Below are positions 38,451 through 56,200 of a stretch of DNA of 64,000 nucleotides, one piece after another (within the stretch, counting starts at the first letter, position 1; each line of letters begins with the position of its first letter). The stretch comes from Iphione sp. A-MEVVRFRX5 (lineage: Eukaryota). The notes under the pieces are model-generated. The model was given only the letters and a program-made list of their open reading frames with translations, made no database searches and had not been told where the DNA came from. The DNA is taken from positions 67,828,001 to 67,892,000 of the forward strand of contig OZ320320.1 in NCBI GenBank assembly GCA_976226885.1. The letters are read 5' to 3'. The position numbers and the translations under genes were made by a program.

Positions 38451-40148
38451 TGGCCTACACATGAACTACAAGACTCACGATTGAAAACCCACGTGACAAA
38501 CAGGCACCATCTACAGGTGGTCAACCATACTACCGAGGCTCAAACGTGGCTTTTGATTGGTTGTCAAGATGGATGGGCGGGATTTATAGTTTTTTTGTCA
38601 GGCTTTCATCATATTAATCGGTATTTTTAGGGAGGGGATTAAAGAATGGCAAATAGAAACTACGATTTGTCATGTCCTTTCGCTTTCGGTCCACGTGGAC
38701 GGACACACAAACTTTCCAATGCAGTGAATAAATATTACAACTTGAATAAACTCTTAGCCGAGTCTTACTCTCATAAGTGCCAGAAGGGTTCCCGGATCAA
38801 ATGATATATATTCCTGTTACCGAACTAATTCAGAGCTCAGTTCGTACGCACTAAAGGTCCTTTACAACGAAATACATACACATATACACAGACACGTACA
38901 AACAAGCATGCATAAGGAGACACAAAACTGTACTAAATTTTATTGTTTGGTTATTTGCCAGTCATCATGCTCAAGGCGTCTTTTATTTGGTTTCTTTATT
39001 CACTTTCAAAACCTACAATTCGCAAATTAGGACCAAGTTTCCAGTTATGTTTCTTAGTTATGTATATAATGTGCACCGCCGATTTACTTATATATTTGTT
39101 CACTGTATTTTGCGCTGAGACCTTATATATGAAGGTGACGGTCTTGCTTATCTGTGACTGGTAGAGAGCTAACTAGTGGCGGTATTTATCATCTCATACA
39201 TAACATCTTTTTTTTTTCAAACAGCTTGACGTCTTCAAGTATTGACATAATCCCAGAACCGCTGGGACAACAATACAGCCAGTTATTCTCGCCCGAGTAT
39301 TGTATATAGATGCCCAGAAGTGCCGAGTTGTCTGTGATTGACAGTAGATTTGATAAATATGTTACAATGTATACAAATGCATGTTATCCTGTGGGCATTC
39401 CCTTTCCCGTTTTTATACTTCCCTTTCCTGTACATGGCTTTCGTATGTTCTTAGGTCAAGGAGAACATTCTCTGTATTGATTTATGCCAGTTAAGCAGAT
39501 GTTTAGAAACTTGGATGAACATGATATTTATTTTAACCTTCTAAATAAACTTTGAATAACTCATTATTCGCTCCACTTTCTGATATTTATACTACTTCAG
39601 TCGTCATGTTTAAGTAACTTTCCGATGCGAATATGGTTTGAAGAAGGAGGTTTAAAGTAATTTGAGTATTTATTAGGAACTAGTTGGACCTCAGGTTAAA
39701 AGCGGGACGATGGAGCATGCATGGATTTTGTTGAATAAAACAGTTTACTAAAAGACTTATGACAAAATTTGTCCAGCTATGAACGTCAATGCTGACAGTG
39801 TCAGCTTTACAGTGGCCTCCAGTGATAACAGTGCATCCTGTGGTCCATAAGAGCCGAGAGAAATAAAACAACTCCGTGGTACTTTACTGATTTTTATTCA
39901 CAAGTTAAGATTTCAAGCTAAGGGAGTTTTTTTCAGTCTACAACTGAAGGAACGTTTTATCCAATAATACTCATCATAATTGGTATTCGGTTAAATCCTT
40001 AACGGCCTCAAATTCACTTTTACAATCTGTCACAAATTTAGAGTCATTCACATCTCTATCTCTGCCTCAACAGTCCTGCATCTTTGTGAATCAAGCAAAG
40101 GAACCTGTCCTTTTTGGCAATTTTTTTTGTTTTATATATAAATACAGC

Positions 40149-43100
40149 TCACAGTTCGGTGAAGAAGCGCATGACAGCCCGCACGATGCCGATGTCATTG
40201 TAGTTGAGGTAGCAGAGTCCTCCAAATGCAGCCATTGACATAAGCAGCAACACAGGCTTTACTAATGGCCGAAGGTATTCGCCATGTACATAGTCGGTGG
40301 TCACTCCCTGGAAAGCCCTACAGAGAGAAAGACACCAGTGTTAACAAAGTTGAATAAAGTTGAAATAGCAGCATCCTCGAAATGCAGCCATTAACATGGA
40401 TAACAGCATCGGCTTTTTGAATGGTTGAAGGTTTTCACTGGTGTACACAAGGGATACTCCCATAAAAGCCCTACAGAAAGAATGACATCAATGTTCTTAA
40501 GGTGCAGGTGCGGAGACTTCCAAATGCAGCTATAAATATAAGTAGCAACATGATGTTTACTAATGATCAAAAGTATTCACTATGTACAGTGGTCACTTGA
40601 TTAAAAGCCCTTCAGAGAGAAAGATGATCATCATATTCAGGTTGTGCAGTCTGTTGAATATAAGCACTAAAATGAACTTTCACAGAGCTGAGCTTGGAAA
40701 ACAACAGACTCATCTCCCTATTTTTACTTCTACTTAAGTGTGCTTTCTTATCATGCAAGCCTTGTAAATATCCTTATTAGATGAGAACACTTTGTCATTT
40801 TCTTATTATGAGAGCTGCTTGTCAGCCACGCTGATGTTGCACGACGACATGAAGTCCCAAATTTCAAATGATTATGCTTTCTGGTAATCAGGAGCCTGAG
40901 ACTTTCAAGATCAACATGCTTAAACATTACTTAATCAGGACATGAAAGATGACAGCAGCTGACACTGCATAGCTGAGGGCAGCTGATGGAAAAGAGGAGC
41001 ACTGCTAGGAAGATGGGGATGAGATCAATGGTTAACCAGCATTTTTAAACATAACTCACCAGTGGACATGAAGTACGACGGCAGCTGACACTGTATAGTC
41101 TAGGGCAGTTGATGGAAAGAGGAATGCTGCTGGGATGACGGGGATGAGAGCGAAGGCTAATACCCGCTCTCCCTTCCAGTGACTGATGGCAGGTGGGTGG
41201 TCGCCTTCTGAAGGGTCAAGGACAATGAGTAATTAAGGAAACATAACCTGTCTGGTAGTGCAATCAATATTCTGAAAACTGCCGAGTCTGCATTCTTTTT
41301 AATTTATCCAAATACATTTGAACGGAATAGAAAGCATCTGTGGTCCAGAATGAAAGTAATGCGCATTTCATTATCAAACGGGTGAACATGTTTCTCCACT
41401 GATGATAAAAATATATACTAACACATTATAAAAGCGTTACTGTTCTTTCAGTCTACAGCTTCCCTTCCCTTACCTGCTGGTCCATATATGCGTGCATCTC
41501 GTCTCGGCGTCACTGCTAGCGTCTTGGAGGGGCCAACAGATGCTGCTAGTGGCGCCATCCGGCGGAGCAGCTGGGGACCTGCCACTCGGGACAGGTGACT
41601 GGCTGCAATATTTTAACCGACTATGAAGCATGTGTGTTTTTTGAATATATTTATACATGATCTATAATGCCAAATACACAATATAAACAGTCCAACAGTC
41701 TGTCAGACCACGATATGCACGGCTGCCCCTGTTGCTCTAGCTATATCTAATTGTCGTGCTAATTCCTGGTAAATTATTGCAACTCAGCAAAGGGAAGGCA
41801 TAGCCAACTATACAAACAGCTATTGTTCAGCCTCGCTCTCGATAATGTTAGTGCTGAGTTCAAAGTTAACGCTCACCCAGTAACCACAAGTCAACTTTTT
41901 TCTGTGTGGGTTAACTTTTATTCCCTCAGAACTAATAAATCAGACCAAGGTGATCAAGTGATGTTCAGAGGTCTGACTGTCCTTAGAGTAGCTGTTGACT
42001 ATTTCTCCATTCAGGGTCGACAACATATGCCGGTCAAAGTTATGAATTCCTGAGCCAAATGATCCAGATGGATAAAATTTGAAAAAAGTTATGGTTGAAC
42101 CCTGGTCTAGTCTAGTCAAACAGCCATTCTGTTTGCTGCAATCAAATCAGCGATAGCATGCTCTGTGAAGGTCGTCCAGGCCTGGGAGAAGGGTTACTAT
42201 TATGTATGACTACAATGAATTCGATCTGGTAGATGTAGGGTAGGGAACCCAGTTGTTTCAGGCCGGGCCAGTTGATTTGGGCCCACTGTACACCACTCTC
42301 TCTGTGAATGATGTAGATGACATGACATCCGGGGGGGGGGGGGGGAGTTAGCTCAGTGGTAGAGCACTGGTCCACTGACTGAGAGGTCACAGGTTCAATC
42401 CTGGGCCTAGGACTCTTGATCAAGACCAGACAGATTTACTGTAGCCCTAACCCAGAGTGGTCCACAACTCGTAAAAAAAAGCTGTGGGTATATAGGATTC
42501 TGTCCTCCATGTACAAAAAGATCTCAGAAACCTATTTGAAATAAGAGTAGGGAGGAACTTGGGGTATTCTGGTCTCTCAATTCTCAATAAAAGATGGTAG
42601 TATGCTACCCCAGGAGGATATGGAAGAGCCCTGTCATATGATAGGTGAATATCTAGTTCCTGGTAAAAGATACAATGAAATGAAATCAAATGAAATACCC
42701 TCTTTGGAGCTAAGTTATCTATTCTGTGGCATTTGTGACCTAATTTCAAATCAAAACACAGAAAATTCACGCTAAAATGGCATGCTTCTGTTAATGTTTC
42801 CCATTAGGAAGTTGCGTGGAGTAACATATTGTTACGACCCGATCTAAGCATTGCGAATAAACCAATGTCCACACAGAAGTAAAATAGACGTGTTATTTAT
42901 TCAAGAGCAAACCGTGAACTGAACGGTGTCCCCGCACGCACTCCTATTTATACACCAGCCATAACGTGCGGGGTAACTAACTGCGGAGACATTTACTCCT
43001 CAAAGATCGCGGAGACAAGTTTACTCAGCATAAATTGCGGGGAAGTACATCCCCGCACAACACTGCTCCTCCTCGTAAAAGACTCGGCCCCCGAGTCACT

Positions 43101-46100
43101 TTTAAGAATACCGAGAAATACATCCCAGTAACAACATTATCACAGTAAAACAGAGAAGTACATCTCTGGAGCAATCGAATTTCCAACTCTGAATATAGGG
43201 AAGTACATCCCAACCATAAAAAAAGGGTAGCTTATTAATCTGAAGAATCTGGGAAGTACATCCCTGTGTCAAAATGCAAGAGTGGTGGGACTTAAGGTCC
43301 AAGTCTCTGTGTAACTCACTGAACTGGAAGAACGTCCTTGTAGTCTAGCACCAATATAACTTATTTACATAGGGTGCCCATAGGGCACAGTCCGTAATCC
43401 TGGGACATCCGTTTCGACTCAGTTATCGTCTGTTCGCCATTTCCACAGTCCAACACAGCCGGTCTCACTCTTAATCCTCCAACCCGCCCCTTATGGGGGC
43501 GGTTGGGCCCTGGTCCCCGACAAAGGTCTCGTCCGCGGACAGGGAGGCCACCCCGTCTTCACTGTTCGTCACCATAACATCATTATAGGAGAGCCTCATG
43601 TGGGCTCCACCTCTGGCTCGCCTCGCTTGCCACCAGGTCCACACACTGGTCTGGGCCACATCCGGTTGGGGACTCAGTTCAGCAGAGTGGTCAAAATGGA
43701 CCTGGGGCCTTGCTGAATGTAGGCGAAACCGGATCCTCGTCTCGGCTGTCCTGATGCGCCAACCAGCTGGCGGCGCTTCCCCAAGGGTGAGGGCCCGACC
43801 GTAGGCCCACTCGATCAGCTCTTGTTCTTCCTCAGCAGACAGCACTGGCCACGGTGTTGGGGCCGTCGCTGCCCGAGGGGGACCGGCCCCACGTGGGCCA
43901 GCCCCTCCCTCACCTGGGCCCGGGGGAGCAGCACGTGGGCGAACCTCGTGAAGAACCTCTTCTTGCTCGCGGCGTGGTCCGGCCCCCGGCCCCGGAAGGT
44001 CATCGCGCGGGTGACGCTCGTGAAGGACGTCCATCTGGTCGCGCCGTGGTCCCGCCCCTGGTGTCGCTGTGTCCCGCTCGGGGGACTGGCGGCCGGCCGG
44101 ATCACCCTCCCCCCCCTCCTCCTCCGACCCATGGGCGCCGGTCGAAGGGGATAGGGTGGGCGGTCGAGGGCCAGGGGGGACCTCCTCGTCGTCGCCGCCC
44201 TCTTCTTCTGGTCTGACACCCGGCACGTCGTCAGCTCCGGCTTCCGTCTCTCCGAGGCCCAATAGTGTGGCCACGGCCTCGTCCACGGCTGCTCCCGTCG
44301 GTTGGTCGCCATTCCGGTCACCTCCGGTCGTCTGCCACGTCGCCCTTACCGGTGGCCTCCTCGGGGCCGATGGCCAACGTCCCCGCCCCCCCGGCCGGGG
44401 TAGTGGGCAGCGAGGGTGGTAAGTCTCTCTCCGAGAGGGTCACGGCGAAGACCCTCCCGGATGGTGTAGAGGTGGTAGGCTCCTCTCGTCGCTCGGACTG
44501 GCCCAACCCAGCCTGTCGGATGACCTCGGCCGCCTCCTCACTCCAGTCCGTGACAACTGACGAGGGGGAGGGCAGTGCTGAAGAGGGCTGGCTCCCGGCA
44601 CGGGGTGATGCTCGGTGCCGGAACCCGAGTCCCAGCCCCCTTCCCTTGGGTGCGCCGCAGTCAGTAGGAAGGAGCCATCCTCTCCCCGGGGTCGGGGGCG
44701 AGCTCCCCGGCAGGGACACTCGGGGGGAGGTGGCGGCAGGCAGTCCTCCGGCCCCTCCTGGGGCAACCTCTTGCTGGCGGTGGCGAGCCTCACTGAGCCG
44801 GGCGGCCGCGATCAGTTGCGGCGTGAGGCTGGGTGTGGATGCCCGGCTACTCGAGTCTAGGCCCCAGAGCTGAACGTGCGTCCCTGGTCCCGGCGACAGC
44901 CCCGGGCTCCCTGCACTCGTCCGTCCCTCGGGTAGGCTGACCGCTGGGCTGCCGGTACTGGATACAACAGGCTTCTGTGGCACCGTACTCCCTGCCTGTC
45001 CGGGGTCGGGGGTAGTCTGGCTGTCATCCCGCTCTGGCGAAGGGGTGGCCGGTCGCCCCCGTGCGGCGGATGCTCATCACGGCAGACGTTTCCGGGGAGG
45101 AGGGTTGGCTGAATCGCTCTCCAAGTCGCGAGGTGATGACGTCATCTTCCGCCGCCCCGTCGTCCGTTGCAACCCCGAGGTCGAAGGCTGAGGAGACGCC
45201 GCCCTGCCGCTGGAGCCCGACGTCACCACCTGTAGCTGGCCATCATCGGACGAGGTCAGCTCCTCTTCCACGTCGTCGCCTTCTTCCTCCGAGTCTTCCT
45301 CTTCCACCATCGACGCCGACGTAGTGCCCTTGGCTCGCTTCTTACTTGGCACGTCCTCCCCGCGAATCATGGCCAGCTCTTTTCTTCTTTCGAACGCCTC
45401 AAGTTCCTTCTCCTGTTCGAATTCCGCCTGCCGGAGGGGAGGGACTGGCACCACGGTGCCCGTCAACGGGCCTGCCTCTGTCGAAAACCTCATGAACTCC
45501 ACCTCGACATCCTGCCCAATCTGGAGGTAATGGGGCTGGAAGTCTTGGTGGACCCCTCGAAGGTGGCGCCGGAAGTCGTCCCGGCGCTTGAAGATCTTCC
45601 CCTTGCACCGCGGCACGGGGCAGCGCCGTACGAAACCCTCCGCCTCATGCACACGGTAATGGCGGATCAGGTTGGCTTTCCGCCTAAACACCTTCTGGCA
45701 TCGGCTGCAACGCGGCGACGGCTTCCTCGCAGGCATCTCTCTCCGAAGACGGCGACACGCGGGGCAGGTAGTATCTTCTCCGCGCGGGGACGGTACCGTG
45801 CGGGGTTGGACCACCCCGCCCGGGGTAACTTTCTCCGCGCGAGGACTGGGTACCCCGCCTGGGGCTCTGCTATGGTTATCCCCGCCCGGGGATGCGGCGA
45901 CGTTCCTGTCAAGGGTACTCCGCACCGGGGTCGCGCAGACCACTCCGCTCGGGGCGTTGGTCGACTCACTGAAGCTATCCCCGCCCGGGGATACACACAC
46001 GTTGATAATGCTTCGGCCTGAAACAATTCGTCCAGTCTTTGCTTCCTGTTGTAGGGGTACAGCTTGTTCGTCACCTCGATGGCGTCTCAACACAAGTGGC

Positions 46101-49100
46101 GGTCCCCGCGCGCACCTTTCCTTATATACGCCGCCACTACTCCGCAGTCGATTCTGATTGGTTGATTCAGATCTCGCGGTCAACGAGACAATGTTTCTCC
46201 GCGCGTAGTGCGGGTATCTGGTCTTTGCCGCCTTCTCTTGGTGCGGGGTCGTGGACTTTGCCCCTCCTTCGTGCGGAGACTTTGTCTTCGTCGATATGCG
46301 CAGTCGCTCTCCCCGCTCGTGGTGCAGGGGCGTGGACTTTGCCGCTGGGGCTCGACGCGGGGTCACGGACTTTGTCGTCCTCTCCTGCGGAGACCTTGTC
46401 TTGGTCGATGTCCGTGGCCCCCCCCCCGCTCTTGGTGCGGGTACCTAGACCCGAGAGATCGGCGGTAGCGCTCTTCGTTCAACTGGTTGAACTCTCGGAA
46501 AATTGCAGTGGTGGTAGACTTCCCGATCCTCTCTTCCATCTTGCGGCGTACTCCCTTTATCTTCCACATTAAGCGGCCCAAACGATATTTAGCGCCTTTA
46601 TCATTGAGGGACATGACTCCAGCCAAGTATGCCTTGCTCAGTAGGGGGGCTACTAGTTTAGCCCAGGCTCCTTCTTTGTTATTCCTTGGTTTCCACCTCT
46701 TATCCTTCTTTTGGGCGAGACAATCCTTCTTCTCTCCCGGAGGCCTGTACCACCGTGGGGGGGGGCAGTGTCCGGGCCGGAGCGTCAGGGCTTGCTCCGG
46801 TCCCTCAAAGGTCGATCTAGGAGGGGGGGGCCAGAGGTCCTTCTGTCCTCTCTGCTCCCCCGCGAAACCTGTCGTGGTCCCTCCTCCTGACCAACCCCCA
46901 CTACCAGTCCCCCCTCGTGGTGCCTCCAGCTCTTCCATCTCTTCTCGCCACACCGCGTGGACCACCCCTATGACGTTATCACTCGGGGCGGTTATTGCTG
47001 GCTTCAGTAGGTCAGCATGAACGACTCGCCGCTTCCTTCCGTGCGCGATGCGATAAATGACCTGAGACAACCGACTTTCGATCACCCACGGGCCGTGCCA
47101 ATGACGCTGTAACTTTGGGGAACGTCCAATCTTCTTCGTGGGGTCTAGTAGCCAAACGGAAGCTCCTTCCTGATATACGTGCTCCCGCACACGTCGATCG
47201 TACCAATCCTTTTGTCGCTCGGCACACCTCTTGAGCTTCTCCCGGGCGAGGCTGTGAGCTTGGATTAACTCCTCCTGCTGTCGATTGACGAATTCCCCTC
47301 GGGGTTCCGAGTCTTCTGGCGGCTGTCCAAACATCAACTCTGCTGGCAAGGTCGTCTCACACCCCAATAACAAGCTATTGGGAGTCAGACCCGTCCCACT
47401 GTGAGGGGTGGCCCGATAAGCAGCCAGCGCGAAGGGGATCTTCTCGTCCCAATCCCCCTGTCCTTCTTCCACCAGAGCAGCCAACATGCGGTTCAACGTA
47501 CGGTTAAATCTTTCCACCACTCCATCGCTCTGGGGATGGTACGGAGTGGTCCGGGATTTCTCTACGCCTAGCATCTTCAACAACTCGCGGAAGAGCGCCG
47601 ACTCGAAGTTCCTGCCTTGATCGGAGTGGACTATCCGGGGAGGGCCATATCTGCACACTATCTCCTTGAGTAACACGCGGGCTGTGGTCTCTGCCGTAAA
47701 ATCCGGCACTGGAAAAGCTTCCACCCATTTAGTAAAGTGGTCAGCCACCACGAGGACATAGCGGTTCCCTTGCCTGGTCTCTGGAAAGGGGCCGCTTACG
47801 TCTACTGCTACGAACTCCCATGGTCCAGCGATGGGTCGGGCCATGAGCGGACTCCTCTTCTTCACCCCCGGATCTTTGGTCTGTTGGCAAGTCAAACACT
47901 GCTGTCCCCAGCGCTCCACATCACGTCCTAGGCCTGGCCAGAAATACCTGATGCGCAGAGCACCTTCAGTCTTCTTCACTCCCAAGTGTCCTCCCAGAGC
48001 TCCGGAGTGCACCTGCTCCCAAACTTCTTGCCGTAACTCTGTAGGGACATAGGCTTGAGGGGTCTTGCTGCCATCCTCTCTGTCAAACTGCCGGACAAGG
48101 ATGCCATCCTTCAGTGTCAAACGAGGGGTCTCCCCATAGAGGCACCTCTCTTCCCGATTGCCCGGACTGATGGAACCATCCTGCTCCGGTGCGCGGCCCT
48201 GTTCCAGTGCTTCGATGATTTTTCCTGTTAGTACCTCCCGCCGTTGAGCTGCTCGGAGTACTCCTTCACCTACTGGCACCACCCTAACGGCACACACCTC
48301 TTCGGTTGCTTCGTCTTCTTCTTCCTCATGCCGACCACACTGAAGACAGACCTTCCTTGACAAGCCGTCTGCGTTCCCATGTAGCCGCCCCGGGCGATGC
48401 ACAATTTCTAAGTTGTAGGTGTAGACCTCTTCTAGCCATCGGGCTAACTGTCCTTCCGGTTCCTTAAAGTTGCAGAGCCAACGAAGAGAGTTATGATCGG
48501 TACGAATGCACACGTTCTGGTCCCCCAGGTATGGCCGAAATTTCCGCAGTCCGAACACCACCGCCAGCAATTCCTTGCGGGTGACGCAGTAATTCCTCTC
48601 AGCCTTCGTCAACGTCCGGCTTGCATAGGCTAGGACCCGTTCTTGTCCATCTTGGTCCTGGGAGAGAACAGCTCCGATCCCTCCTGCTGATGCGTCTGTA
48701 TCGAGGTGGAGTTGCCCCTCAGGCCGCGGATACCCCAGCACCGGTGCGCTAGTCATTCGCTTCTTGAGCTCTTGGAAGGCCTCATCGCATTGGTCGTCCC
48801 ACCGGAACTCTGCATCCTTCATCAACAGCTTGTTCAAGGGCGCGGTGATGGTAGCGAAAGCCCGTACGAAACTTCGGTAGTACGAACAGAGGCCAATAAA
48901 ACTTCGTAGCTCCGTCAGGCAACGAGGGCGTGGCCAAGTCTGTATGGCCCGGATCTTTTCAGGGTCCGGCCCTACACCATCAGCTGAGACCCGATGTCCC
49001 AGATACGCCACTTCCTCCTGGAAGAGTTGACACTTGCTTGGCTTCACTCTCAGTCCCGCCTGTAACAGCCTGCTGAACACCTCTTCTAAGCGGTCGACCA

Positions 49101-52100
49101 TTTCTTCCACTGTCCGCCCGATCACAATCACGTCGTCCAAGTAAACTAGACAAGTCTGTCCGTCCAGTCCTCGCAGCACTGCCTCCATGAGTTGCTCGAA
49201 CGTAGAGGGGGCATTGCAGAGGCCGAACGGCATCACAGTAAACTGGTACAACCCGGCAGAAGTACACACCGCTGTCTTCTCCCTGTCCTCCGGTCGTAAC
49301 TGTACTTGCCAGTATCCTGCCGCGAGGTCAATGGCCGAGAAGTACCTCGCCCCCTGCAGGGCATCCAGGGTGTCATCGATGCGGGGGAGAGGGTAGGCAT
49401 CCTTCTTGGTAACGCGATTCAGGGCCCGGTAATCGATGCAAAACCTCCAACCACCATCTTTCTTCCGGACCAGGACTACCGGTGATGCCCAAGGACTGGT
49501 TGATGGCTCCAGAACGCCCTTCTGTAACATGTCGTCCACTTCCTTCTGTACAGCCTTGCGCTTGGCCGGAGGCAGTCGTCGCACCCTCTGACGAATTGGA
49601 CGGTGCCCCTGAGTGTCAATATTGTGGACGACCACTTCAGTTCGTCCTAACGGCTCGTCTTCTCGCTGGAACACCTGGCTGCAGTGCGTCAACATGTCTT
49701 CGATGCACTGTCGCTGGGAATCGGATAGCGAGTCCGGCAAGGTTTCCAACAGTCCAGCCAGCCCGCGGGTGCTTCCTTCTTCGACCACTCGTGCCCGTCC
49801 GCATTCTTCTTCTTCTTCTTCGCCTGAGACTGGGGTCGCCACTCCTATGACTGTCCCCTCTCTCAACCGTATCCGCGTAGAGCCGGGGTTACAAAGCTGC
49901 AGCTGACCTCGTGTCACTCCTGTCTCCCACAGCGTCCTAGCTACACGGATTCCCGACCTCGCCTTGAAGCTCTCCGCGCCTTCCACTAAGACTTCCTCGG
50001 CGGCCCTGGCGGCCCCAACCAGCGCCGCCTCCACGTATCCTACGCATCCGCCTTCCACCGCTGTGTCCTCTACCAGACAGACTCGCCGTGACTCGCCCTC
50101 GCTGTCCTTCGGCACCCTCACTCGCAGCTCGGATGTAGAAGCGTCCAACAACGCCCTCCAATGCACCAAGGTGTCCATGCCCAGAATTCCGTCGCAGTCA
50201 ATGTTAGCAATCAGGACCTTCACGGAAACACACAGGGACTCGAACTGTACTTCCACCTCCGCTCGTCCTCCCACCTTCAGAGGCGTCCCGTCTGCACACA
50301 GCACACGTCCTCCTACTGAAGCTCGACCCTCAACGCCCACTGCTTCCGCAACTTTTTGACTCAAGATCGTAAGGGAGGCGCCCGTATCTACCAGCCACTT
50401 CACTTTTCTTCCTCGAATCTGGCTACTGAGGATGATGCCACGGCCAGTCCGGTCTGGGTCTCCTTCCAATACCACTTCCTGGCACTCGTCCTCCCCCAAT
50501 CGCAGTTGCCACAGATGATCCTCAGCAGGGTCTTCAAGTGTGGTGACGGCCGCCCTCCCTACTGCTGGGGAGCGGCCGCTGGCCCGTTTCCCGAGGTCGT
50601 GGCTGCAACCGATGTCGCCCCTTTATACTGCGGGCAGTCCTTCTTGAAGTGTCCCGGGTCATCACAGATGAAACAGCCCTTCTTCTTTCCCTGCCTACGT
50701 GCTCCTGTTCCCGCGTCTTGGCGCTTCACCAGCTGTCCCAGCAATTCTTCAATACGGCGCCACGGTTCGGCCGCTCCACTGGACTTGCCTTCGACGCTCT
50801 CCTCTCTGTGTTCAGCCACGTGTACCCGCTTCGGCGTGCGTTCTCTTTTGCTGTCATAGTACGACTCGGCCAGTTGAGCTTCCGACAGTGCTGTACGGAA
50901 GGAGGTGACCCGTGCCTGTGTTACCCACTTCCGCTCTTTTTCGTTGGCCAAGGCCCCAAGGAAGTACTCCCGACACATCCTGTCCTTCCACTGGCCCGTG
51001 GCCTCGGGATAGGCCAAACGGACCAATCGTTCCACATCATCGGCTAGGTCGGCCAGCTTCTCCTCCTTCCCCTGCTTCCGATACTTCAGCTGCTGCATGT
51101 AGGCATCGATCTGATCCGCCGGCTGGAACCGATCACGTAGGGCCTGGACTATCTTGTCGAACGCTCCGGGCTCTTCCACATCGACTTGTGCGTTACGCAA
51201 CGCCGTCCTTGCTGCCTTACGCAAGGCCACTCCAAGTTGTATGGCCTTCTCTCTGTCATCCCATGCGTTGGCCGCCGCAACCAGTTGATAATGATGGAGA
51301 AAGTCAGGCAAGGACGTCGTTCCATCGTAGGTGTCCGGTCTAATAGAAGTGCGACGGGGTCTCTCTGAGGGTCGGGCCACCCGCCTGAGCTCGTCAACCA
51401 GGTCCTGAATGAGGGGGTCCTCTTCCTGCCTCGGCCGGGCTTCCTCCTCATCACTGGACTCCTCTTCGGAAGATGCTACAGCAGCGTCTTCTTCCTCCTC
51501 TTCGAGTTCACGGGCTCTAACTGCTCGGGGTCGAGGTGCGGGAACGGGGGTAGCTGTTATCGCTCGCCTTTCCCCCTCCCCGGCACCTGTAAATGGGGAT
51601 AGGGTCCTTCTCCTCCTAGCGGTCTCCTTCTCCTCAGATCCAAGGGTACAAGCCGTGTCAGCACCGAACCTCGAAGGAGCCTTCTTCCCCCCTCTGGGGA
51701 AGTTCTCCGCTCGGCCTGACGACCCATGCTCTGCCCCTGGGTCCTCCGCCCCAATTGCGGGGAAAGGTGTCTCCGCAATTTCTGAGGGGTAAAGATGCTC
51801 CGCATCTTTTGAGGAGTAAGAGTGCTCCGCACGATCTGAGGAGTAATAGTGCTCCGCACGATCTGAGGAGTCGGTATTCTCCGCACCAGAAGGAGAGTCG
51901 ATCCCACCGCTGCCACCAATGTTACGACCCGATCTAAGCATTGCGAATAAACCGATGTCCACACAGAAGTAAAATAGACTTGTTGTTTATTCAAGAGCAA
52001 ACCGTGAACTGAACTGTGTCCCCGCACGCACTCCTATTTATACACCAGCCATAACGTGCGGGGTAACTAACTGCGGAGACATTTACTCCTCAAAGATCGC

Positions 52101-52987
52101 GGAGACAAGTTTACTCAGCATAAATTGCGGGGAAGTACATCCCCGCACAACACTATATATACTTCCTTACACTAGGCATTACACATATCTGATTCATCAG
52201 ATACCGTAGTCTCTCTATATTACTTTTTTTAGACATGTATGCACAAATAGAGGGATACCCGCACATGAACACCACCAGCATGAATAGTGTTTACATGTAA
52301 ACGCGGGTAGTTGCTAAGCCCAGTCTGTGTGCTCCGGTACAATTTTTATTAAAAGCATGTTCACAGTGCTGTTAAAGTTGTGTACATAGTTCACTTTTTT
52401 ACCACTGCACCAAACTGGCGCTCGATAGATACAATACACATATGTGAACGTGACGACCGTCAGCAGTAAGCAATTCGGATTTAGACGGCATTGTCATTGA
52501 AAAATATTAATAGTGACTGATATTGGTTCATCCCAAGGGGCATTATATTGTAACTTAAATATGGAATCACACTGCTTCTTTCTTCCTTTCAAATCAAAGA
52601 TGCATCGTAAGTAAGATGCACGATAAGTAAAAGACTTGGATGCATTGGCCCGCTGTTTATGCGGGGAAATTTACTCATTCTGGGAGACAGTTTTCCGAAA
52701 TTGCCAGGAACGCTCCGAAATCACTTAGCACCAAATTGACTCTCCCGTAAACCCTACCAGCAGTAGTAGTAGGGTGTGACAATCAGACTCAGAGACAGCT
52801 TTACATAATATTACTAGCATGATTTCTTTTCATGACAGAAATAACACGAGATAACATATGTAGAGAACCACTGAAATATAATTCAGGAAGACAACTATCT
52901 ATGAAATTTGATGAAATTTTACGGAAAAGAAGGATAAATTCAAAAGATTTTACCTTGTGTCAACCGAAGCAGCGTCAAGGTCGCCAT
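40149..52987 (-). CDS. SDHD: Succinate dehydrogenase cytochrome b small subunit (4 exons, 159 aa)
   Basis: Exons 52954-52987, 41474-41602, 41060-41207, 40149-40317, all GT-AG and phase-consistent. SHWKGERVL, LDYTVSAAVVLHVHW, VTTDYVHG and GLCYLNYNDIGI match CybS/SDHD. Element 3 lies in intron 1. Confidence 0.92.
40341..40470 (-). pseudogene. Diverged tandem copy of SDHD exon 4 (open, acceptor kept)
   Basis: ctttctgtag|G-AFMGVSLVYTSENLQPFKKPMLLSMLMAAFRGCCYFNFIQLC* aligns to AFQGVTTDYVHGEYLRPLVKPVLLLMSMAAFGGLCYLN. Confidence 0.8.
40512..40612 (-). pseudogene. Second, broken copy of SDHD exon 4
   Basis: AFNQVTTVHSEYF* with an early stop and a weakened acceptor. Confidence 0.7.
40938..41038 (-). 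pseudogene. Partial tandem copy of SDHD exon 3
   Basis: acatgaaagatgacagcagctgacactgcatag... parallels acatgaagtacgacggcagctgacactgtatag... of exon 3. The donor site is lost. Confidence 0.75.
42343..42412 (+). mobile_element. tRNA-derived sequence (probable SINE head or tRNA pseudogene)
   Basis: A box TAGCTCAGTGG (42349) and B box GGTTCAATCC (42392). No convincing acceptor stem or anticodon arm. Confidence 0.55.
42830..43062 (-). repeat. 3' LTR of element 3
   Basis: TGT...ACA. Minus-strand TATAAATA (42945-42952) and AATAAA. Two GCGGAG and four GCGGGG sites. Confidence 0.95.
43063..43097 (-). other. Hairpin + U-tract + polypurine tract (element 3)
   Basis: Sense strand GACTCGG-GGG-CCGAGTC TTTT ACGAGGAGGAGCAG | TGTTG (LTR). 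Confidence 0.8.
43471..44439 (-). CDS. 3'-most accessory ORF of element 3 (frame open for 322 aa, no early ATG), homologue of element 2 ORF4
   Basis: VDEAVATLLGLGE matches IDEAVRTLAELAE, and EWAYGRALTLGEAPPAGWRI matches LWANGRLVTPLVAAPLGWRL. Confidence 0.7.
   Translation of the reverse strand, partial: PSRRETYHPRCPLPRPGGRGRWPSAPRRPPVRATWQTTGGDRNGDQPTGAAVDEAVATLLGLGETEAGADDVPGVRPEEEGGDDEEVPPGPRPPTLSPSTGAHGSEEEGGEGDPAGRQSPERDTATPGAGPRRDQMDVLHERHPRDDLPGPGAGPRREQEEVLHEVRPRAAPPGPGEGGAGPRGAGPPRAATAPTPWPVLSAEEEQELIEWAYGRALTLGEAPPAGWRIRTAETRIRFRLHSARPQVHFDHSAELSPQPDVAQTSVWTWWQARRARGGAHMRLSYNDVMVTNSEDGVASLSADETFVGDQGPTAPIRGGLED
44318..45073 (-). CDS. In-frame continuation of the element 3 ZF ORF after TGA-TGA (251 aa)
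   Basis: VQLWGLDSSSRASTPSLTPQLIAAARLSEARHR aligns with VRLHGLDSSPASTGLTPELKRVAAACEARQR, which lies inside the element 2 ZF ORF. Confidence 0.6.
   Translation of the reverse strand, partial: ASAARGRPATPSPERDDSQTTPDPGQAGSTVPQKPVVSSTGSPAVSLPEGRTSAGSPGLSPGPGTHVQLWGLDSSSRASTPSLTPQLIAAARLSEARHRQQEVAPGGAGGLPAATSPRVSLPGSSPPTPGRGWLLPTDCGAPKGRGLGLGFRHRASPRAGSQPSSALPSPSSVVTDWSEEAAEVIRQAGLGQSERREEPTTSTPSGRVFAVTLSERDLPPSLPTTPAGGAGTLAIGPEEATGKGDVADDRR
45077..45736 (-). CDS. C2H2 zinc-finger protein of element 3 (219 aa from gagATG)
   Basis: MPARKPSPR-CSRCQKVFRRKANLIRHYRVH-EAEGFVRR-CPVPRCKGKIFKRRDDFRRHLRGVH, then charged helix, KKR patch and acidic tract. First ATG after the internal promoter; the frame is open up to about 46444. 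Confidence 0.82.
   Translation of the reverse strand: MPARKPSPRCSRCQKVFRRKANLIRHYRVHEAEGFVRRCPVPRCKGKIFKRRDDFRRHLRGVHQDFQPHYLQIGQDVEVEFMRFSTEAGPLTGTVVPVPPLRQAEFEQEKELEAFERRKELAMIRGEDVPSKKRAKGTTSASMVEEEDSEEEGDDVEEELTSSDDGQLQVVTSGSSGRAASPQPSTSGLQRTTGRRKMTSSPRDLESDSANPPPRKRLP
46092..46164 (-). promoter_or_regulatory. Internal RNA Pol II promoter of element 3
   Basis: Minus strand: AACCAATCAG (CCAAT at 46161-46157), TATATAAG from 46128, Inr CCACTT with A at 46097 (31 nt from the TATA). Confidence 0.72.
46363..50592 (-). CDS. pol: Pol polyprotein PR-RT-RH-IN plus C-terminal extension of element 3
   Basis: Intact 1378-aa ORF (46363..50499), open up to the slippery site. WLVDTGAS, YLDDVIV, HSGALGGHLG, VAVDVSGPF, HSDQGRNF, GVVERFNRTL. 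Confidence 0.96.
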   Translation of the reverse strand, partial: GKRASGRSPAVGRAAVTTLEDPAEDHLWQLRLGEDECQEVVLEGDPDRTGRGIILSSQIRGRKVKWLVDTGASLTILSQKVAEAVGVEGRASVGGRVLCADGTPLKVGGRAEVEVQFESLCVSVKVLIANIDCDGILGMDTLVHWRALLDASTSELRVRVPKDSEGESRRVCLVEDTAVEGGCVGYVEAALVGAARAAEEVLVEGAESFKARSGIRVARTLWETGVTRGQLQLCNPGSTRIRLREGTVIGVATPVSGEEEEEECGRARVVEEGSTRGLAGLLETLPDSLSDSQRQCIEDMLTHCSQVFQREDEPLGRTEVVVHNIDTQGHRPIRQRVRRLPPAKRKAVQKEVDDMLQKGVLEPSTSPWASPVVLVRKKDGGWRFCIDYRALNRVTKKDAYPLPRIDDTLDALQGARYFSAIDLAAGYWQVQLRPEDREKTAVCTSAGLYQFTVMPFGLCNAPSTFEQLMEAVLRGLDGQTCLVYLDDVIVIGRTVEEMVDRLEEVFSRLLQAGLRVKPSKCQLFQEEVAYLGHRVSADGVGPDPEKIRAIQTWPRPRCLTELRSFIGLCSYYRSFVRAFATITAPLNKLLMKDAEFRWDDQCDEAFQELKKRMTSAPVLGYPRPEGQLHLDTDASAGGIGAVLSQDQDGQERVLAYASRTLTKAERNYCVTRKELLAVVFGLRKFRPYLGDQNVCIRTDHNSLRWLCNFKEPEGQLARWLEEVYTYNLEIVHRPGRLHGNADGLSRKVCLQCGRHEEEEDEATEEVCAVRVVPVGEGVLRAAQRREVLTGKIIEALEQGRAPEQDGSISPGNREERCLYGETPRLTLKDGILVRQFDREDGSKTPQAYVPTELRQEVWEQVHSGALGGHLGVKKTEGALRIRYFWPGLGRDVERWGQQCLTCQQTKDPGVKKRSPLMARPIAGPWEFVAVDVSGPFPETRQGNRYVLVVADHFTKWVEAFPVPDFTAETTARVLLKEIVCRYGPPRIVHSDQGRNFESALFRELLKMLGVEKSRTTPYHPQSDGVVERFNRTLNRMLAALVEEGQGDWDEKIPFALAAYRATPHSGTGLTPNSLLLGCETTLPAELMFGQPPEDSEPRGEFVNRQQEELIQAHSLAREKLKRCAERQKDWYDRRVREHVYQEGASVWLLDPTKKIGRSPKLQRHWHGPWVIESRLSQVIYRIAHGRKRRVVHADLLKPAITAPSDNVIGVVHAVWREEMEELEAPRGGTGSGGWSGGGTTTGFAGEQRGQKDLWPPPPRSTFEGPEQALTLRPGHCPPPRWYRPPGEKKDCLAQKKDKRWKPRNNKEGAWAKLVAPLLSKAYLAGVMSLNDKGAKYRLGRLMWKIKGVRRKMEERIGKSTTTAIFREFNQLNEERYRRSLGSRYPHQERGGGHGHRPRQGLRRRGRQSP
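50546..50592 (-). other. Programmed -1 frameshift signal gag/pol (element 3)
   Basis: G GGA AAC (50592-50586) followed by a CGGCCGC..TCCC / GGGA..GCGGCCG hairpin with the gag stop at the loop. Confidence 0.85.
50559..51941 (-). CDS. gag: Gag of element 3 (460 aa from the ATG at 51941)
   Basis: MLRSGR start inside the LTR, RPDTYDGTTSLPDFLHHY, knuckle CFICDDPGHFKKDC. Confidence 0.95.
   Translation of the reverse strand: MLRSGRNIGGSGGIDSPSGAENTDSSDRAEHYYSSDRAEHSYSSKDAEHLYPSEIAETPFPAIGAEDPGAEHGSSGRAENFPRGGKKAPSRFGADTACTLGSEEKETARRRRTLSPFTGAGEGERRAITATPVPAPRPRAVRARELEEEEEDAAVASSEEESSDEEEARPRQEEDPLIQDLVDELRRVARPSERPRRTSIRPDTYDGTTSLPDFLHHYQLVAAANAWDDREKAIQLGVALRKAARTALRNAQVDVEEPGAFDKIVQALRDRFQPADQIDAYMQQLKYRKQGKEEKLADLADDVERLVRLAYPEATGQWKDRMCREYFLGALANEKERKWVTQARVTSFRTALSEAQLAESYYDSKRERTPKRVHVAEHREESVEGKSSGAAEPWRRIEELLGQLVKRQDAGTGARRQGKKKGCFICDDPGHFKKDCPQYKGATSVAATTSGNGPAAAPQQ
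51784..51891 (-). repeat. 27-bp tandem array (4 units) just after the PBS, one CTCCGC per unit
   Basis: Unit gaggagtaagagtgctccgcacgatct and variants; encodes the DRAEHYYSS-like repeat of Gag. Confidence 0.85.
51901..51918 (-). other. Primer-binding site, tRNA-Leu (element 3)
   Basis: ATCCCACCGCTGCCACCA, 1 nt from the LTR. Confidence 0.9.
51920..52152 (-). repeat. 5' LTR of element 3
   Basis: Matches 42830-43062 except for 4 substitutions. Confidence 0.95.
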
Positions 52988-53271
52988 GATCTTTTAGGTG
53001 TCTCTGGAAAATTTATTGTCTTCAGTCAGTGAGTCGCAGCATGATGTTATTTGCATAATATAATTAGGATAATTTCACAGAAATTTTACTTAAATGAATA
53101 CGCAGGATATCAGCGACAGAAAACTAGCTGATGGACAGGGAATGAACTGAATAATTTTTTGGGCGATAAATGGGGTTTGTTTTCGTGGCCGCCTTGAAAG
53201 TTGGTATGGTAGTTGACTAGAGGGTCCTAAGTTCATTAGAGGAAGAGTTTATTTTGAAAGGTAAAACAGAT
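52988..53271. promoter_or_regulatory. Bidirectional promoter region SDHD/gkup
   Basis: Divergent ATGs at 52987 (-) and 53272 (+), 284 bp apart. Confidence 0.7.
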
Positions 53272-56200
53272 ATGATTTGTATAGTATTAGTTGCTGGTCA
53301 TGGAACTCTCTTGGAAACAGAGATCAAAGTAAGTTGTCATACACTTCAATTCTGTTGGGACACGCTTTTCTAACGGGTTGGGAGAGCTTCCCCCTTTGAA
53401 GTGACGACCACCTATGGGCTCCTACGACAGGATCCGGACAATTGGGCCCCCAGATGATTGGGCCCCTAATACTTTCACTTTGGCAATGATGCATGGATTT
53501 GATGCAACCAAGACAATTTTGATGGTAATCATGCAAAGAATATGTCTAACTTGATAAAAAGTCTGCAAGTACCCTATTTAGTGGCTGTTTTAATATAGTC
53601 TAGTCAGCCACCAAAATGTTATGCACAATGGCTGTCACACTGCATGATGTATGTCAGTGTACTTTTCATAAGTATTTAAGGTAGTTACAAAAGACTTTGA
53701 TACGCTTGTGTTATTCCTTGCATTATTCGCTTTCAAATGAATTTTGTTACATAGAAATCAGTGTATTATTTGTGGAGTTAGGTAGGCAGCCAACTTGGTA
53801 GGTGGCCAAGTCAGTCAGCAGCTACATTCAGTGTCAGAGAATGCTTTCAGCAGTATTTTGATTGTGATTCATGTGTGGCGTGGTATTTTATTTTTTTCAA
53901 ACCTTTGTTGTATCTGTTTCATTATGTAGTATTAATTTTATATTGATAACTGTATAGAATAGATAGTGAAGTTGTGGGGTAGATCTATTTATGGGCCCAA
54001 TTGTCTGAAATTAGGGGCCCAATTGTCTGGGAGCCCAATCGTCTGGGGGCCCAATTGTCTGGCATTCAAGGTTCCACACCCCACACAGATCCTTAGACCC
54101 CCACCTTGCACTATCCCCCTCCACCCAGACATATCCCTATTCAGACAGGATTTAGACAGGTTCCAGTGCCTTCTTAGACTGAGGGCGTACTTTCACAACA
54201 ATCATAACACCCCTCCCCCCCCCAAACCAGTCCCCAAACCCCTCCTATCCCCCTCACCTACCCCACACCTACCTCCCTAGGGTCTCTTCCTACACCCCGG
54301 GCTTCACATTCTTTAGAGACATATCTAACAAGTGGCCTCTTCCAGTGCGCTCCCTCTCCGCACTGCACATCTACAACACACCTACATGTGTGGGTTCCAC
54401 TGCCTGAAGAACCTCAAGGACATACTTGTTTGTTCCTGCTTCCCATCTCTCCTCCCTACCCACCCCAAGACTGGGAACAATCCTCTCCTATCTATCCCTC
54501 CCTGTTCCACCTACAAGGGACAGAAGATCCCTTTGGCGATGCCTCACAAAACTGTATATATTGCCCCCACCTCAACAAGACAGGGGCGATAAAGAGTGCC
54601 ACCACAGGACACTCATACATCACTAAACACAACCTCACTTGCTGGAGCTCCAATATCATCTACTGCACCACTTGCAAGAGATGTGGGGCCCCGTATGTGG
54701 AATAAACCAAGAACAGATTAATGTCAGACAGTCTCACCTCTACAACATAACCCGTGGCTTAGATGATAGCTTCATCCCACTTCACTTTACCTTGGGACAT
54801 ACCCCTAAGTGCATCCAGGACATAGAGGTACACATCGTGGACTTCATCCACTGTTGCCCTAGGAGTAACAGAACCGTACATCTATGTCTTCCAATCAAAC
54901 ACCATTGGATTCACCAGCTACGGACCTAGGCACCCCTGGGCCTGCACATGATTTCCTCAGAGAGTGACCACCAAGAGAGAATACTCCCTCTCCACCAGGC
55001 CCTAGCCTCGTAACAATTTTAAAGAATTATCCATAGGGAATTGAAGCCGGTATATACCAGTATCTCAACAACTACTGGATTAAGAGTTTACTAATTGAAC
55101 AAAAAGCAGAAGCTGTGATTTTAATACGCATCCTTTTCTATTTTAAGATGGATGATATAGAAAAATGTAGACAAAAGAATTTACCAATCCATCAGTGCTA
55201 ACAAACATGGTGACTAGAATGCACCCAAAATTCATAGTGTATTGCATTACTAGCTTTCTATGTACATGTATTAAGGAGATGGAAGCCGATCCCGTCAAGA
55301 GGTCAAGGAGAGGCATCACTTATACATATTTAAGTTAATTATTTCAACTTCGAGGTGGGACAAATAGATAGCTCACAGTGATTTCCGACCAGATATGATA
55401 ATTGTTGGACCAAAGCTCGAGTGTCAAGAAGCATGCCAAGTACTAGTACTTTGTATATTTCCCATTTTCCCTTGTGCTACTCTAGAGCTATTCCGTCTGT
55501 TTCTTTCAGAAATCAGTGGAGTATGTTCATCTAGCTGGAGTTCCGAAAGCTTTGCTTCCCGGTGTCGGTGGGAAGCGTATCCTCGACTACTGGTGGGAGG
55601 CACTCAAGACGTATGTACAACCACTGTTATCAATGCCTTCATCTCAATAGTTTCCTCACGACTAAATGTACAGTTCACATTGGAATGTATCCCCCCATGT
55701 GCTGCAAATATTGTTTGATCCAGTAAAAAGATATATGCATATACTTCTATCATGATATGTCAGGTGATTTCAGTTAATATAGGGCTGATAAAACAAACAT
55801 GTATGTACTCAATCTTGATGTTATCGTTCTGAATCTGTGCAAAGTAAAAGACAGAGATATTTCAAGTGTTTATTCATGAAAATAACTGGTTTGACTGGTA
55901 TAGTCGAGTAGCACTTATTTTTCTCACTTAAACTCGACATCTTACTAGGAAGTATTTTAGTAGCCCCAGCAGTTAAAGACAAGTGAAGTGGATAGTGACC
56001 AGGCCATTTCACGGATAGGATATTTATAATCTGGTCTGATTTGTAGAAAATTATTGAAACCTTGTATTATAGGCGCCAACTGTTCACAGAAGTCTACCTG
56101 GTAACAAATGCAGACAAGTGAGTATGCACATGCATTTATTTACATTTTAGAAAAGAAGAAGAAAAATGGGCTATACTTATTAGACAACGGCACAACTTTA

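Follow-up and report, generated by a model that had tools for sequence, protein, structure and literature searches.

A Ty3/Gypsy retrotransposon encoding a two-finger C2H2 protein whose predicted recognition word is arrayed in its promoter, its leader and in front of the finger gene

Introduction

Self-encoded transactivators such as Tax, Tat and Tas are a hallmark of complex retroviruses, and are thought to be absent from LTR retrotransposons, which rely on host factors. In foamy viruses, the Tas (Bel1) system uses an LTR promoter together with an internal promoter. Among Ty3/Gypsy elements, Drosophila gypsy carries an array of sites for the host 12-finger protein Su(Hw) in its leader, where the array acts as an insulator, and chromoviruses carry a chromodomain at the C-terminus of integrase. 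In addition, C2H2 proteins such as yeast ADR1 and Drosophila Tramtrack bind DNA through two fingers, and Zif268-type recognition relates residues of the finger helix to the bound bases. Here we describe a Ty3/Gypsy retrotransposon, referred to as element 3, that encodes its own predicted two-finger DNA-binding protein and carries arrays of the short word those fingers should recognise. This suggests, but does not prove, that the element regulates itself. Our literature searches found no description of such a system, although this is not proof that none exists.

Element 3 lies in a 64,000-nucleotide stretch of the Iphione sp. A-MEVVRFRX5 genome (GCA_976226885.1, contig OZ320320.1, positions 67,828,001 to 67,892,000 of the forward strand), which we refer to as the window and within which all coordinates are given. 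A first-pass annotation of the sequence had proposed that element 3 is an independent replicate of a second element in the window, element 2, with the same predicted finger specificity and the same three clusters of motifs in an LTR without visible similarity, implying selection on the motif itself and possible cross-activation between the families. The observation of the fingers and the three motif clusters was confirmed. The interpretation was supported only in part, as the two elements are not of independent origin.

Results

Anatomy of element 3

Element 3 (42830-52152) lies on the minus strand. The LTR pair was found at 42830-43064 and 51920-52154 with 98% identity, and the true TG...CA ends are at 43062 and 52152, giving a 5′ LTR at 51920-52152 and a 3′ LTR at 42830-43062. 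The 5′ LTR contains an AATAAA, and the gag ATG (51941) lies inside U5. The primer binding site (PBS), TGGTGGCAGCGGTGGGAT, is at 51901-51918 and is shared by every finger-bearing class examined, while a purine tract (43063-43078) precedes the 3′ LTR. The element is flanked by ATAT, with an extra AG separating this from the 5′ LTR. The gag frame (50559-51941) has a CCHC zinc knuckle near its C-terminus, and the pol frame (46363-50499) encodes an aspartyl protease, RT, RNase H, an integrase (H2C2, core and p58_C) and a low-complexity tail. Consistently, Pfam hits were obtained to zf-CCHC, RVT_1, RT_RNaseH, Integrase_H2C2, rve and Integrase_p58_C, which together with the termini identify element 3 as a Ty3/Gypsy LTR retrotransposon.

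The finger protein frame runs from a conserved Met at 45736 to 45077 and in this copy is out of frame with pol. Finger 1 is at 45647-45709 (helix RKANLIR) and finger 2 is at 45548-45622 (helix RRDDFRR), in agreement with the first-pass annotation. Finger 1 matches Pfam PF00096 with 33.7 bits against a cut-off of 25.2, whereas finger 2 was identified by its pattern, with C-x4-C-x13-H-x4-H spacing. An AF2 model has two canonical beta-beta-alpha fingers, with helices at residues 20-30 and 52-63, followed by a long helix. PDB sequence matches include ADR1, Tramtrack, WT1 and Zif268, but these are generic C2H2 similarities, and the ESM Atlas returned only generic C2H2 clusters scoring below 0.9. 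The fingers are followed by a conserved beta/long-helix region, a basic patch and an acidic stretch. The remainder of the accessory module (43471-44983) is split in this copy into two frames (44318-44983 and 43471-44286), and its last ~125 aa (43471-43890) form a conserved alpha/beta domain (~110 aa) to which no fold family could be assigned, as Foldseek against PDB gave no match with E <= 0.001 and VIA-align gave Z <= 7.4 to common alpha/beta sandwiches. No other Pfam family was found in the module, and it shows no homology to Tas/Bel1. The 3′ UTR (43065-43340) contains repeated small palindromes of the GGGATGTACTTCCC type.

The word GCGGRG is arrayed in three zones

Each 235-bp LTR carries six GCGGRG sites, two GCGGAG and four GCGGGG, with five upstream and one downstream of TATAAATA (52042-52035 in the 5′ LTR). 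The first two GCGGGG sites of U3 are the arms of one of the palindromic units found in the 3′ UTR. The leader (51705-51884) carries eight sites, of which seven are GCGGAG on the sense strand of the element, seen as CTCCGC on the plus strand at 51705, 51744, 51771, 51798, 51825, 51852 and 51879, and one is a GCGGGG on the other strand. This array is partly a 27-bp tandem repeat and is read as Ala-Glu in the gag N-terminus. The linker in front of the finger gene (45737-46445), a candidate internal promoter, holds 20 GCGGRG sites at 45759-46429 around CCAAT (46161-46157) and TATATAAG (46128-46121), and has no ATG in any frame for 800 nt before the finger Met. We compared these counts with 1000 dinucleotide shuffles, none of which reached the observed count in any of the three zones. 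The shuffle means were 0.12 for the LTR (6 observed), 0.59 for the leader (8 observed) and 2.0 for the internal zone (20 observed). In contrast, the word is depleted elsewhere, with 4 sites observed and 9.4 expected in the rest of gag-pol, and 3 observed and 8.1 expected from the finger gene to the 3′ UTR. An unbiased ranking of 6-mers placed the same word family at the top in LTR, leader and linker in every finger class.

Elements 2 and 3 are sister families

The U3 regions of elements 2 and 3 are essentially unalignable, with a global identity of 0.60 against 0.57 for the best shuffle. However, the U5 end, the PBS and the gag start are homologous, the elements share 59-60% Pol amino acid identity and a homologous finger module, and the Pol tree places them in one clade that inherited fingers, PBS and layout. 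The description of element 3 as an independent replicate is therefore overstated, and the arrays instead persisted through site turnover while U3 became unalignable. Cross-activation between the two families remains plausible given that the contact residues are the same, but this is inferred from sequence alone.

The arrayed word covaries with finger 1

We next compared three finger-less Gypsy families and eight finger-bearing lineages of the same genome, denoted below by class letters or family numbers beginning with L. The first-pass annotation had held that equal enrichment in Gypsy families without the finger gene would point to a host Sp/KLF/EGR factor. The finger-less families L044/L047, L045 and L046 have no GCGGRG in LTR or leader, and this check did not refute the reading, although these controls are all distant (~30% Pol identity) and AT-richer. 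Across six finger classes, the arrayed word tracks finger 1. Families with Asn at +3 (element 2, the element 3 group and L049) have 13-34 GCGGAG in the regulatory zones, classes B and C with Arg at +3 have 14-28 GCGGGG and 0-7 GCGGAG, and class D with Lys at +6 has GCGAGN. L048, which has an acidic helix, has no array, though its LTR was not included in the comparison. The base-contact residues of finger 2 (R, D, R) are invariant while neighbouring residues vary. Only 2-3 independent helix/word co-transitions exist on the tree. The recognition code also misses at position -1, where class B has Asn and L049 has Gln while the site has G in both cases. In addition, the element 3 LTR has more GCGGGG than GCGGAG despite Asn at +3, and two of its sites belong to the separate palindrome family.

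Selection and possible routes of expression

The fingers and the C-terminal domain are under purifying selection, with dN/dS of 0.03-0.3, against 0.6-1.4 for the linker. In all young copies of four or more classes, PR-RT-RH-IN-linker-fingers-C-terminus is a single ~2400-aa frame, which the first-pass annotation had missed, and the linker evolves almost neutrally yet stays open in all classes. Translation through the linker therefore matters, and a separately transcribed transactivator is only one of two possible expression routes. A Met lies 1-10 codons before finger 1 in 8 of 9 lineages, and ATG is depleted upstream of it in element 3 (P=0.003), L033 (P=0.019) and L038 (P=0.004), whereas classes B, C and E lack a long ATG-free stretch. 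The CCAAT/TATA signals are kept in 29 of 30 family copies but are evident only in class A, with no TATA evident in classes B-D, and the internal start is inferred from sequence alone, as no RNA run was listed for 45000-47000. A swapped, deeply divergent 3′ module begins at about the candidate internal promoter and ends at the stop codon.

Relatives and insertion sites

Two word-index protein searches with the finger region found nothing, and a profile search of 1.84 billion representatives was swamped by generic poly-zinc-finger proteins. An HMM of the C-terminal domain found nothing among 120 Pol relatives. The nearest Pol is a Kryptolebias marmoratus protein with 60% identity over 46% of the queried Pol region, which has no fingers. 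These results do not show that the module is confined to this genome. Seven of nine copies of the clade have the 4-bp duplication ATAT in AT-rich DNA, and the flanks of element 3 are not enriched for the word, with 2 sites in 2.8 kb on each side (P = 0.11-0.15).

Discussion

Our analysis places element 3 in a large Ty3/Gypsy clade of this genome that carries, 3′ of integrase, a module of two C2H2 fingers, an acidic tract and a novel alpha/beta domain. In the mechanism we propose, the finger pair would bind GCG-GAG or GCG-GGG, with finger 2 on GCG and finger 1 on the 3′ triplet. This is in line with the resemblance of RKANLIR and RRDDFRR to the engineered modules RSDNLVR (GAG) and RSDDLVR (GCG). 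The word is kept in arrays upstream of the LTR TATA box, in the transcribed leader, and around a second CCAAT/TATA box just upstream of the finger gene, and the most likely role would be self-regulation of transcription, through either positive feedback or protection from silencing. We put the probability of this reading at roughly 0.5. The anatomy, the enrichment and depletion of sites, the covariation between helix and word, the purifying selection on the module, and the absence of the word from the finger-less families are established by the sequences. In contrast, DNA binding, activation, the sign of any regulation and the route of expression are inferred, and the protein could be released from the Pol polyprotein or translated from a subgenomic mRNA that starts at the internal TATA box.

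An alternative that we consider unlikely, though less so than the others, is that the fingers act as a C-terminal part of the Pol/integrase polyprotein and bind the double-stranded cDNA of the element at the LTRs, leader and linker, aiding pre-integration-complex assembly, nuclear retention or family-specific self-recognition rather than controlling transcription. The single open frame in young copies and the near-neutral linker without stop codons are consistent with this, as is the first site lying 6-18 nt from the U3 end in every class, and class-specific words would give family specificity. However, no site lies near the U5 end, making the arrangement asymmetric, and the sites sit in a classical position upstream of and just after TATA boxes. 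The acidic tract, the conserved Met with its ATG-depleted stretch, which suggests a separate start, and the swapping of the module as a unit that begins at the CCAAT/TATA box also weigh against it. It is also unlikely that the arrays serve a host GC-box factor of the Sp/KLF/EGR type while the fingers do something unrelated, such as RNA or protein binding. GCGGGG and GCGGAG do resemble GC-box and EGR half-sites, and the fit to the recognition code is imperfect. Yet the finger-less families lack the word, the word is depleted elsewhere in the element, the finger 2 contacts are invariant, and a single host factor would not predict a word that changes between classes in step with finger 1.

Two further possibilities appear very unlikely. 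Targeting of integration to GCG-rich DNA by the fingers, in the manner of a chromodomain, would fit fingers in frame with integrase, but was rejected given the ATAT target sites and flanks poor in the word. The arrays could also be a functionless by-product of local tandem duplication in GC-rich, CpG-rich DNA, as parts of the leader and linker arrays are tandem repeats with periods of 27, 33 and ~93 bp. However, the sites occur in both orientations with varied spacing and flanks, recur in three zones in six classes whose sequences do not align, and are depleted outside these zones.

It is tempting to speculate, although we hold this broader view as somewhat less likely than not, that a whole clade of animal Ty3/Gypsy retrotransposons carries a swappable, promoter-bearing transcription-factor cassette, whose recognition helix co-evolves with binding-site arrays in the LTR, leader and internal promoter of the element itself. 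This would be a retrotransposon counterpart of the transactivators of complex retroviruses, with family-specific cis/trans pairs. A Gypsy clade with thousands of copies that brings its own sequence-specific factor, with matching sites that change along with the factor, would give a natural series of such pairs for studying how mobile elements gain transcriptional autonomy, avoid cross-mobilisation and possibly resist silencing. It would also offer compact two-finger modules whose specificities can be read from genomes.

The closest analogy for the proposed mechanism is the foamy virus Tas system. In both cases the accessory gene lies 3′ of pol, and its product is proposed here to bind sites in U3 and in a second promoter just upstream of its own gene, giving feedback. 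However, Tas is not a zinc-finger protein and is not homologous to this module, and here the gene is in frame with Pol in young copies, there is no env, the element is a Ty3/Gypsy retrotransposon, and binding is only predicted. As in Drosophila gypsy, a tandem array of short zinc-finger sites, here only predicted, lies in the transcribed leader just after the PBS, but here the candidate binder is encoded by the element rather than the host, and sites also fill U3 and the linker. The R/D/R and R/N/R contact sets fit GCG and GAG as in Zif268-type recognition, although the two fingers are joined by an 8-residue linker (EAEGFVRR) rather than a TGEKP-type linker. The module also differs from Sp/KLF/EGR host factors, which have three tandem fingers joined by TGEKP-type linkers, in having two fingers and lying inside a retrotransposon. 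The Drosophila elements 17.6 and 297 likewise insert at ATAT with a 4-bp duplication, but carry env and no C2H2 module, and a relationship to them is not implied. Finally, as in chromoviruses, an extra nucleic-acid or chromatin-binding domain is predicted downstream of integrase in the Pol frame, but here a ~400-aa neutral linker separates integrase from the fingers, the target sites are ATAT rather than the finger word, and the word is arrayed in the element itself.

Organization of element 3

Element 3 is bounded by a 235-bp direct repeat pair at 42830-43064 and 51920-52154, which is 98% identical and delimits a 9.3-kb element on the minus strand. The true TG...CA ends lie at 43062 and 52152, in agreement with the first-pass annotation, which had placed the element at 42830-52152. 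Reading along the minus strand, the element begins with a U3 containing TATAAATA (52042-52035) and AATAAA, followed by the primer binding site (PBS) TGGTGGCAGCGGTGGGAT (51918-51901), a gag frame, and, before the 3′ LTR, a purine tract. The gag ATG (51939-51941) lies inside U5, and translation therefore runs through the LTR end and the PBS (51901-51918). Pfam identified a CCHC knuckle in gag, PR, RT, RNase H and IN (H2C2, core and p58_C) in pol, and a C2H2 finger in the next frame. The element is therefore a Ty3/Gypsy retrotransposon with an accessory region of about 3 kb. The host DNA on either side (40000-42829 and 52155-55000) has a CpG observed/expected ratio of ~0.40 at 43% GC, whereas the element has 0.74-1.23, which fits a young insertion in a CpG-depleted genome.

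GCGGRG arrays in the LTR, leader and internal zone

The motif counts in the first-pass annotation are correct and far from chance. Each LTR contains 6 GCGGRG, of which 2 are GAG-type and 4 are GGG-type, with five located before and one after the TATA box. The leader contains 7 CTCCGC on the + strand at 51705-51884, an array that is read as repeated Ala-Glu in the gag N-terminus, and a further 20 sites lie at 45759-46429. We compared each region with 1000 dinucleotide shuffles, and none of the shuffles reached the observed counts for the LTR (6 observed, shuffle mean 0.12), the leader (8 observed, mean 0.59) or the internal zone (20 observed, mean 2.0). In contrast, the word is depleted outside these three zones, with 4 sites against 9.4 expected in the rest of gag-pol (46446-51619) and 3 against 8.1 expected from the finger gene to the 3′ UTR (43065-45736), as if it were avoided there. 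An unbiased ranking of all 6-mers places this word family first in all three zones. Not every site need be a finger site, however, as the first two GCGGGG sites of the LTR are the arms of a near-palindrome (GCGGGGA-TGTACT-TCCCCGC) that belongs to a second repeat family, GGGATGTACTTCCC. Five small palindromes of this type lie in the 3′ UTR and at the start of U3 (43037-43340, minus strand), and a second, different recognition unit may therefore exist.

Predicted specificity of the two fingers

Finger 1 (45647-45709) has helix positions -1 to 6 reading RKANLIR, and finger 2 (45548-45622), which has C-x4-C-x13-H-x4-H spacing, reads RRDDFRR. Engineered modules use RSDNLVR for GAG and RSDDLVR for GCG, and Zif268 uses RSDELTR for GCG. 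By these standard recognition rules, the two fingers are predicted to read 5′-GCG-GAG-3′. An AF2 model built on an 8-sequence alignment (pLDDT 76) contains two beta-beta-alpha fingers, a small beta unit and a 25-residue helix. Sequence matches in the PDB are generic DNA-binding C2H2 proteins, including the two-finger binders ADR1 and Tramtrack.

Finger-bearing elements form one clade

The first-pass annotation described element 3 as an independent replicate of element 2 of the same window, and this description is not supported. A search of the whole genome with the finger protein returned 3801 first-look candidates, and every one that was scored matched, while a second query from element 1 of the window returned 3039. 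Element 1 itself carries three tandem 216-bp repeats (93-96% identical) in the region after integrase (1881-2528), each with GCGGGG sites, and finger 1 of this copy has lost its second cysteine. Several finger and integrase matches with short open frames (348-824 aa) cluster within 0.5 Mb at G000:C2:122.38-122.91 Mb, where L034, an old and degraded copy, has weak LTR similarity (77% over 83 bp). This may be a local array of old copies. Elements 2 and 3 share 59-60% Pol identity, and all finger-bearing lineages share 50-66%, against ~30% to finger-less Gypsy families. In addition, all finger-bearing lineages use the same PBS and start gag in U5. U3, on the other hand, is essentially unalignable between families, with a global identity of 0.54-0.68 against shuffle maxima of 0.53-0.62. 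This indicates that the arrays were kept while the surrounding U3 turned over.

Finger-less Gypsy families of the same genome

Equal enrichment of the word in Gypsy families lacking the finger frame had been named beforehand as an outcome that would count against the interpretation. We read three finger-less Gypsy families of the same genome, namely L044/L047, with 605-bp LTRs, L045 and L046, and found no GCGGAG or GCGGGG in their LTRs or leaders, although the sample is small and these families are distant and AT-richer. The L044 and L047 LTRs have their own unrelated array of ACAGCAC-type words (8-10 copies), and this family has two unassigned ORFs of 316 and 353 aa after pol. L045 carries an 831-aa ORF after pol (L045:7142-9634) that matches the Baculovirus F protein family (PF12259, E = 4.9e-15), that is, an env-like gene.

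Covariation between finger 1 and the arrayed word

We next counted GCG+NNN words in the LTR, leader and linker across six finger classes. Element 2 (finger-1 helix RPGNLRR) has 34 GAG and 2 GGG, the element 3 group (RKANL[IV]R) has 17-20 GAG and 15-17 GGG, and the lineage L049 (QKQNLRR) has 13 GAG and 6 GGG. Class B (N[HQ]YRLKR) has 0-1 GAG and 21-28 GGG, class C (IQYRLER) has 6-7 GAG and 14-17 GGG, and class D (NKYRLLK) has 0-1 GAG, 3 GGG and 13-15 AGN. The lineage L048, with the acidic helix ELEGMYE, has no array. Finger 2 keeps R(-1), D(3) and R(6) in all lineages, and GCG is the constant half of the word. Asn at +3 goes with a middle A and Arg at +3 with a middle G, as the recognition code predicts. 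Position -1 does not fit, however, as Asn or Gln there should favour A but the sites have G. On the Pol tree, (A),((E,F),(B,(C,D))), this amounts to two or three co-transitions, which is suggestive but does not constitute strong statistics.

Possible routes of expression of the finger module

In the window copy, pol, the finger frame and two further frames are offset from each other. In young relatives, whose LTRs are 99-100% identical, a single frame of 2151-2469 aa runs through PR-RT-RH-IN, a ~400-aa linker, the fingers, an acidic tract, a Ser/Pro-rich tract and the C-terminal domain. Between subfamilies, dN/dS is 0.02-0.1 on Pol, 0.6-1.4 on the linker, 0.03-0.3 on the fingers and 0.06-0.2 on the C-terminal domain. 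A near-neutral linker that never acquires a stop in any class argues that translation from Pol into the module is selected.

Other observations point to a separate start. A Met lies 1-10 codons before finger 1 in 8 of 9 lineages, while the sequence upstream of it does not align. In addition, ATG in any frame is depleted upstream of this Met. In element 3 there are none in 800 nt, and 0 against 3.96 expected in 400 nt (P=0.003), while two further lineages, L033 and L038, give P=0.019 and P=0.004, respectively. Class A also has CCAAT and TATA boxes ~390 nt upstream of the Met, with a site ~10 nt after the TATA, just as in the LTR core promoter, and these signals are kept in 29 of 30 family copies. 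Classes B, C and E lack these signs. On sequence evidence alone, both routes may operate.

Exchange of divergent finger cassettes

A comparison of element 3 with the related copies L031 and L033 indicates that the 3′ module has been swapped. Elements sharing 95-99% nucleotide identity over the LTR, gag, pol and the first part of the linker drop to 54-70% from about element position 5800 (window ~46350) to the stop codon, and return to 90-98% in the last few hundred bases. dS is saturated in this segment. At least three deeply divergent finger/C-terminal cassettes have been exchanged onto one backbone, with the contact residues unchanged, and class B shows the same pattern (L035 versus L036). 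The 5′ boundary lies at about the repeat and CCAAT/TATA region, which fits a unit that behaves like a gene with its own control region.

The last ~110 aa of the module are conserved across classes, with invariant W, R, P, W, W, G, E and F, and are predicted to fold (pLDDT 84) as alpha-beta-beta-alpha-beta-beta. A Foldseek search found nothing at E <= 0.001, and an exhaustive structural aligner gave Z <= 7.4 to common alpha/beta sandwiches.

Integration sites

Seven of nine copies have the target duplication ATAT, and in most copies it directly abuts TG...CA. In element 3 (52153-52158 and 42826-42829) and in the copy L039, an extra AG, identical to the end of the purine tract, sits between the flank and the 5′ LTR. 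The flanks of element 3 are not enriched for the word. The fingers therefore do not direct insertion into GCG-rich DNA.

Interpretation and comparison with known systems

Our analysis confirms the observation that element 3 carries two fingers together with clusters of their predicted motif in three zones. The interpretation placed on it is only partly supported, as the arrays represent retention within one clade and not an independent replicate. The site arrays, the depletion of the word elsewhere, its covariation with finger 1, the purifying selection on the module and the absence of the word from the finger-less families read are shown by the sequences, whereas DNA binding, regulation by the element of itself and the route by which the module is expressed are inferred. 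A self-encoded site-specific DNA binder is the best reading, and we place the probability of autoregulation at about 0.5 and that of binding as such somewhat higher. The main rival, in which the fingers would act as part of Pol on the element's own cDNA, is considered less likely.

Literature searches found no description of a Ty3/Gypsy element with a C2H2 factor and matching LTR arrays. Similarly, no relative of the module was found in the protein collections searched, although these searches have blind spots. In its layout, the element would work like the foamy-virus Tas system, in which an accessory DNA-binding protein has sites in U3 and in a promoter in front of its own gene, but it is not a member of that family because there is no homology. 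Being in frame with IN recalls chromoviruses, but the target sites do not fit that role. The leader array recalls the Su(Hw) sites of Drosophila gypsy, where the factor is instead a host protein.
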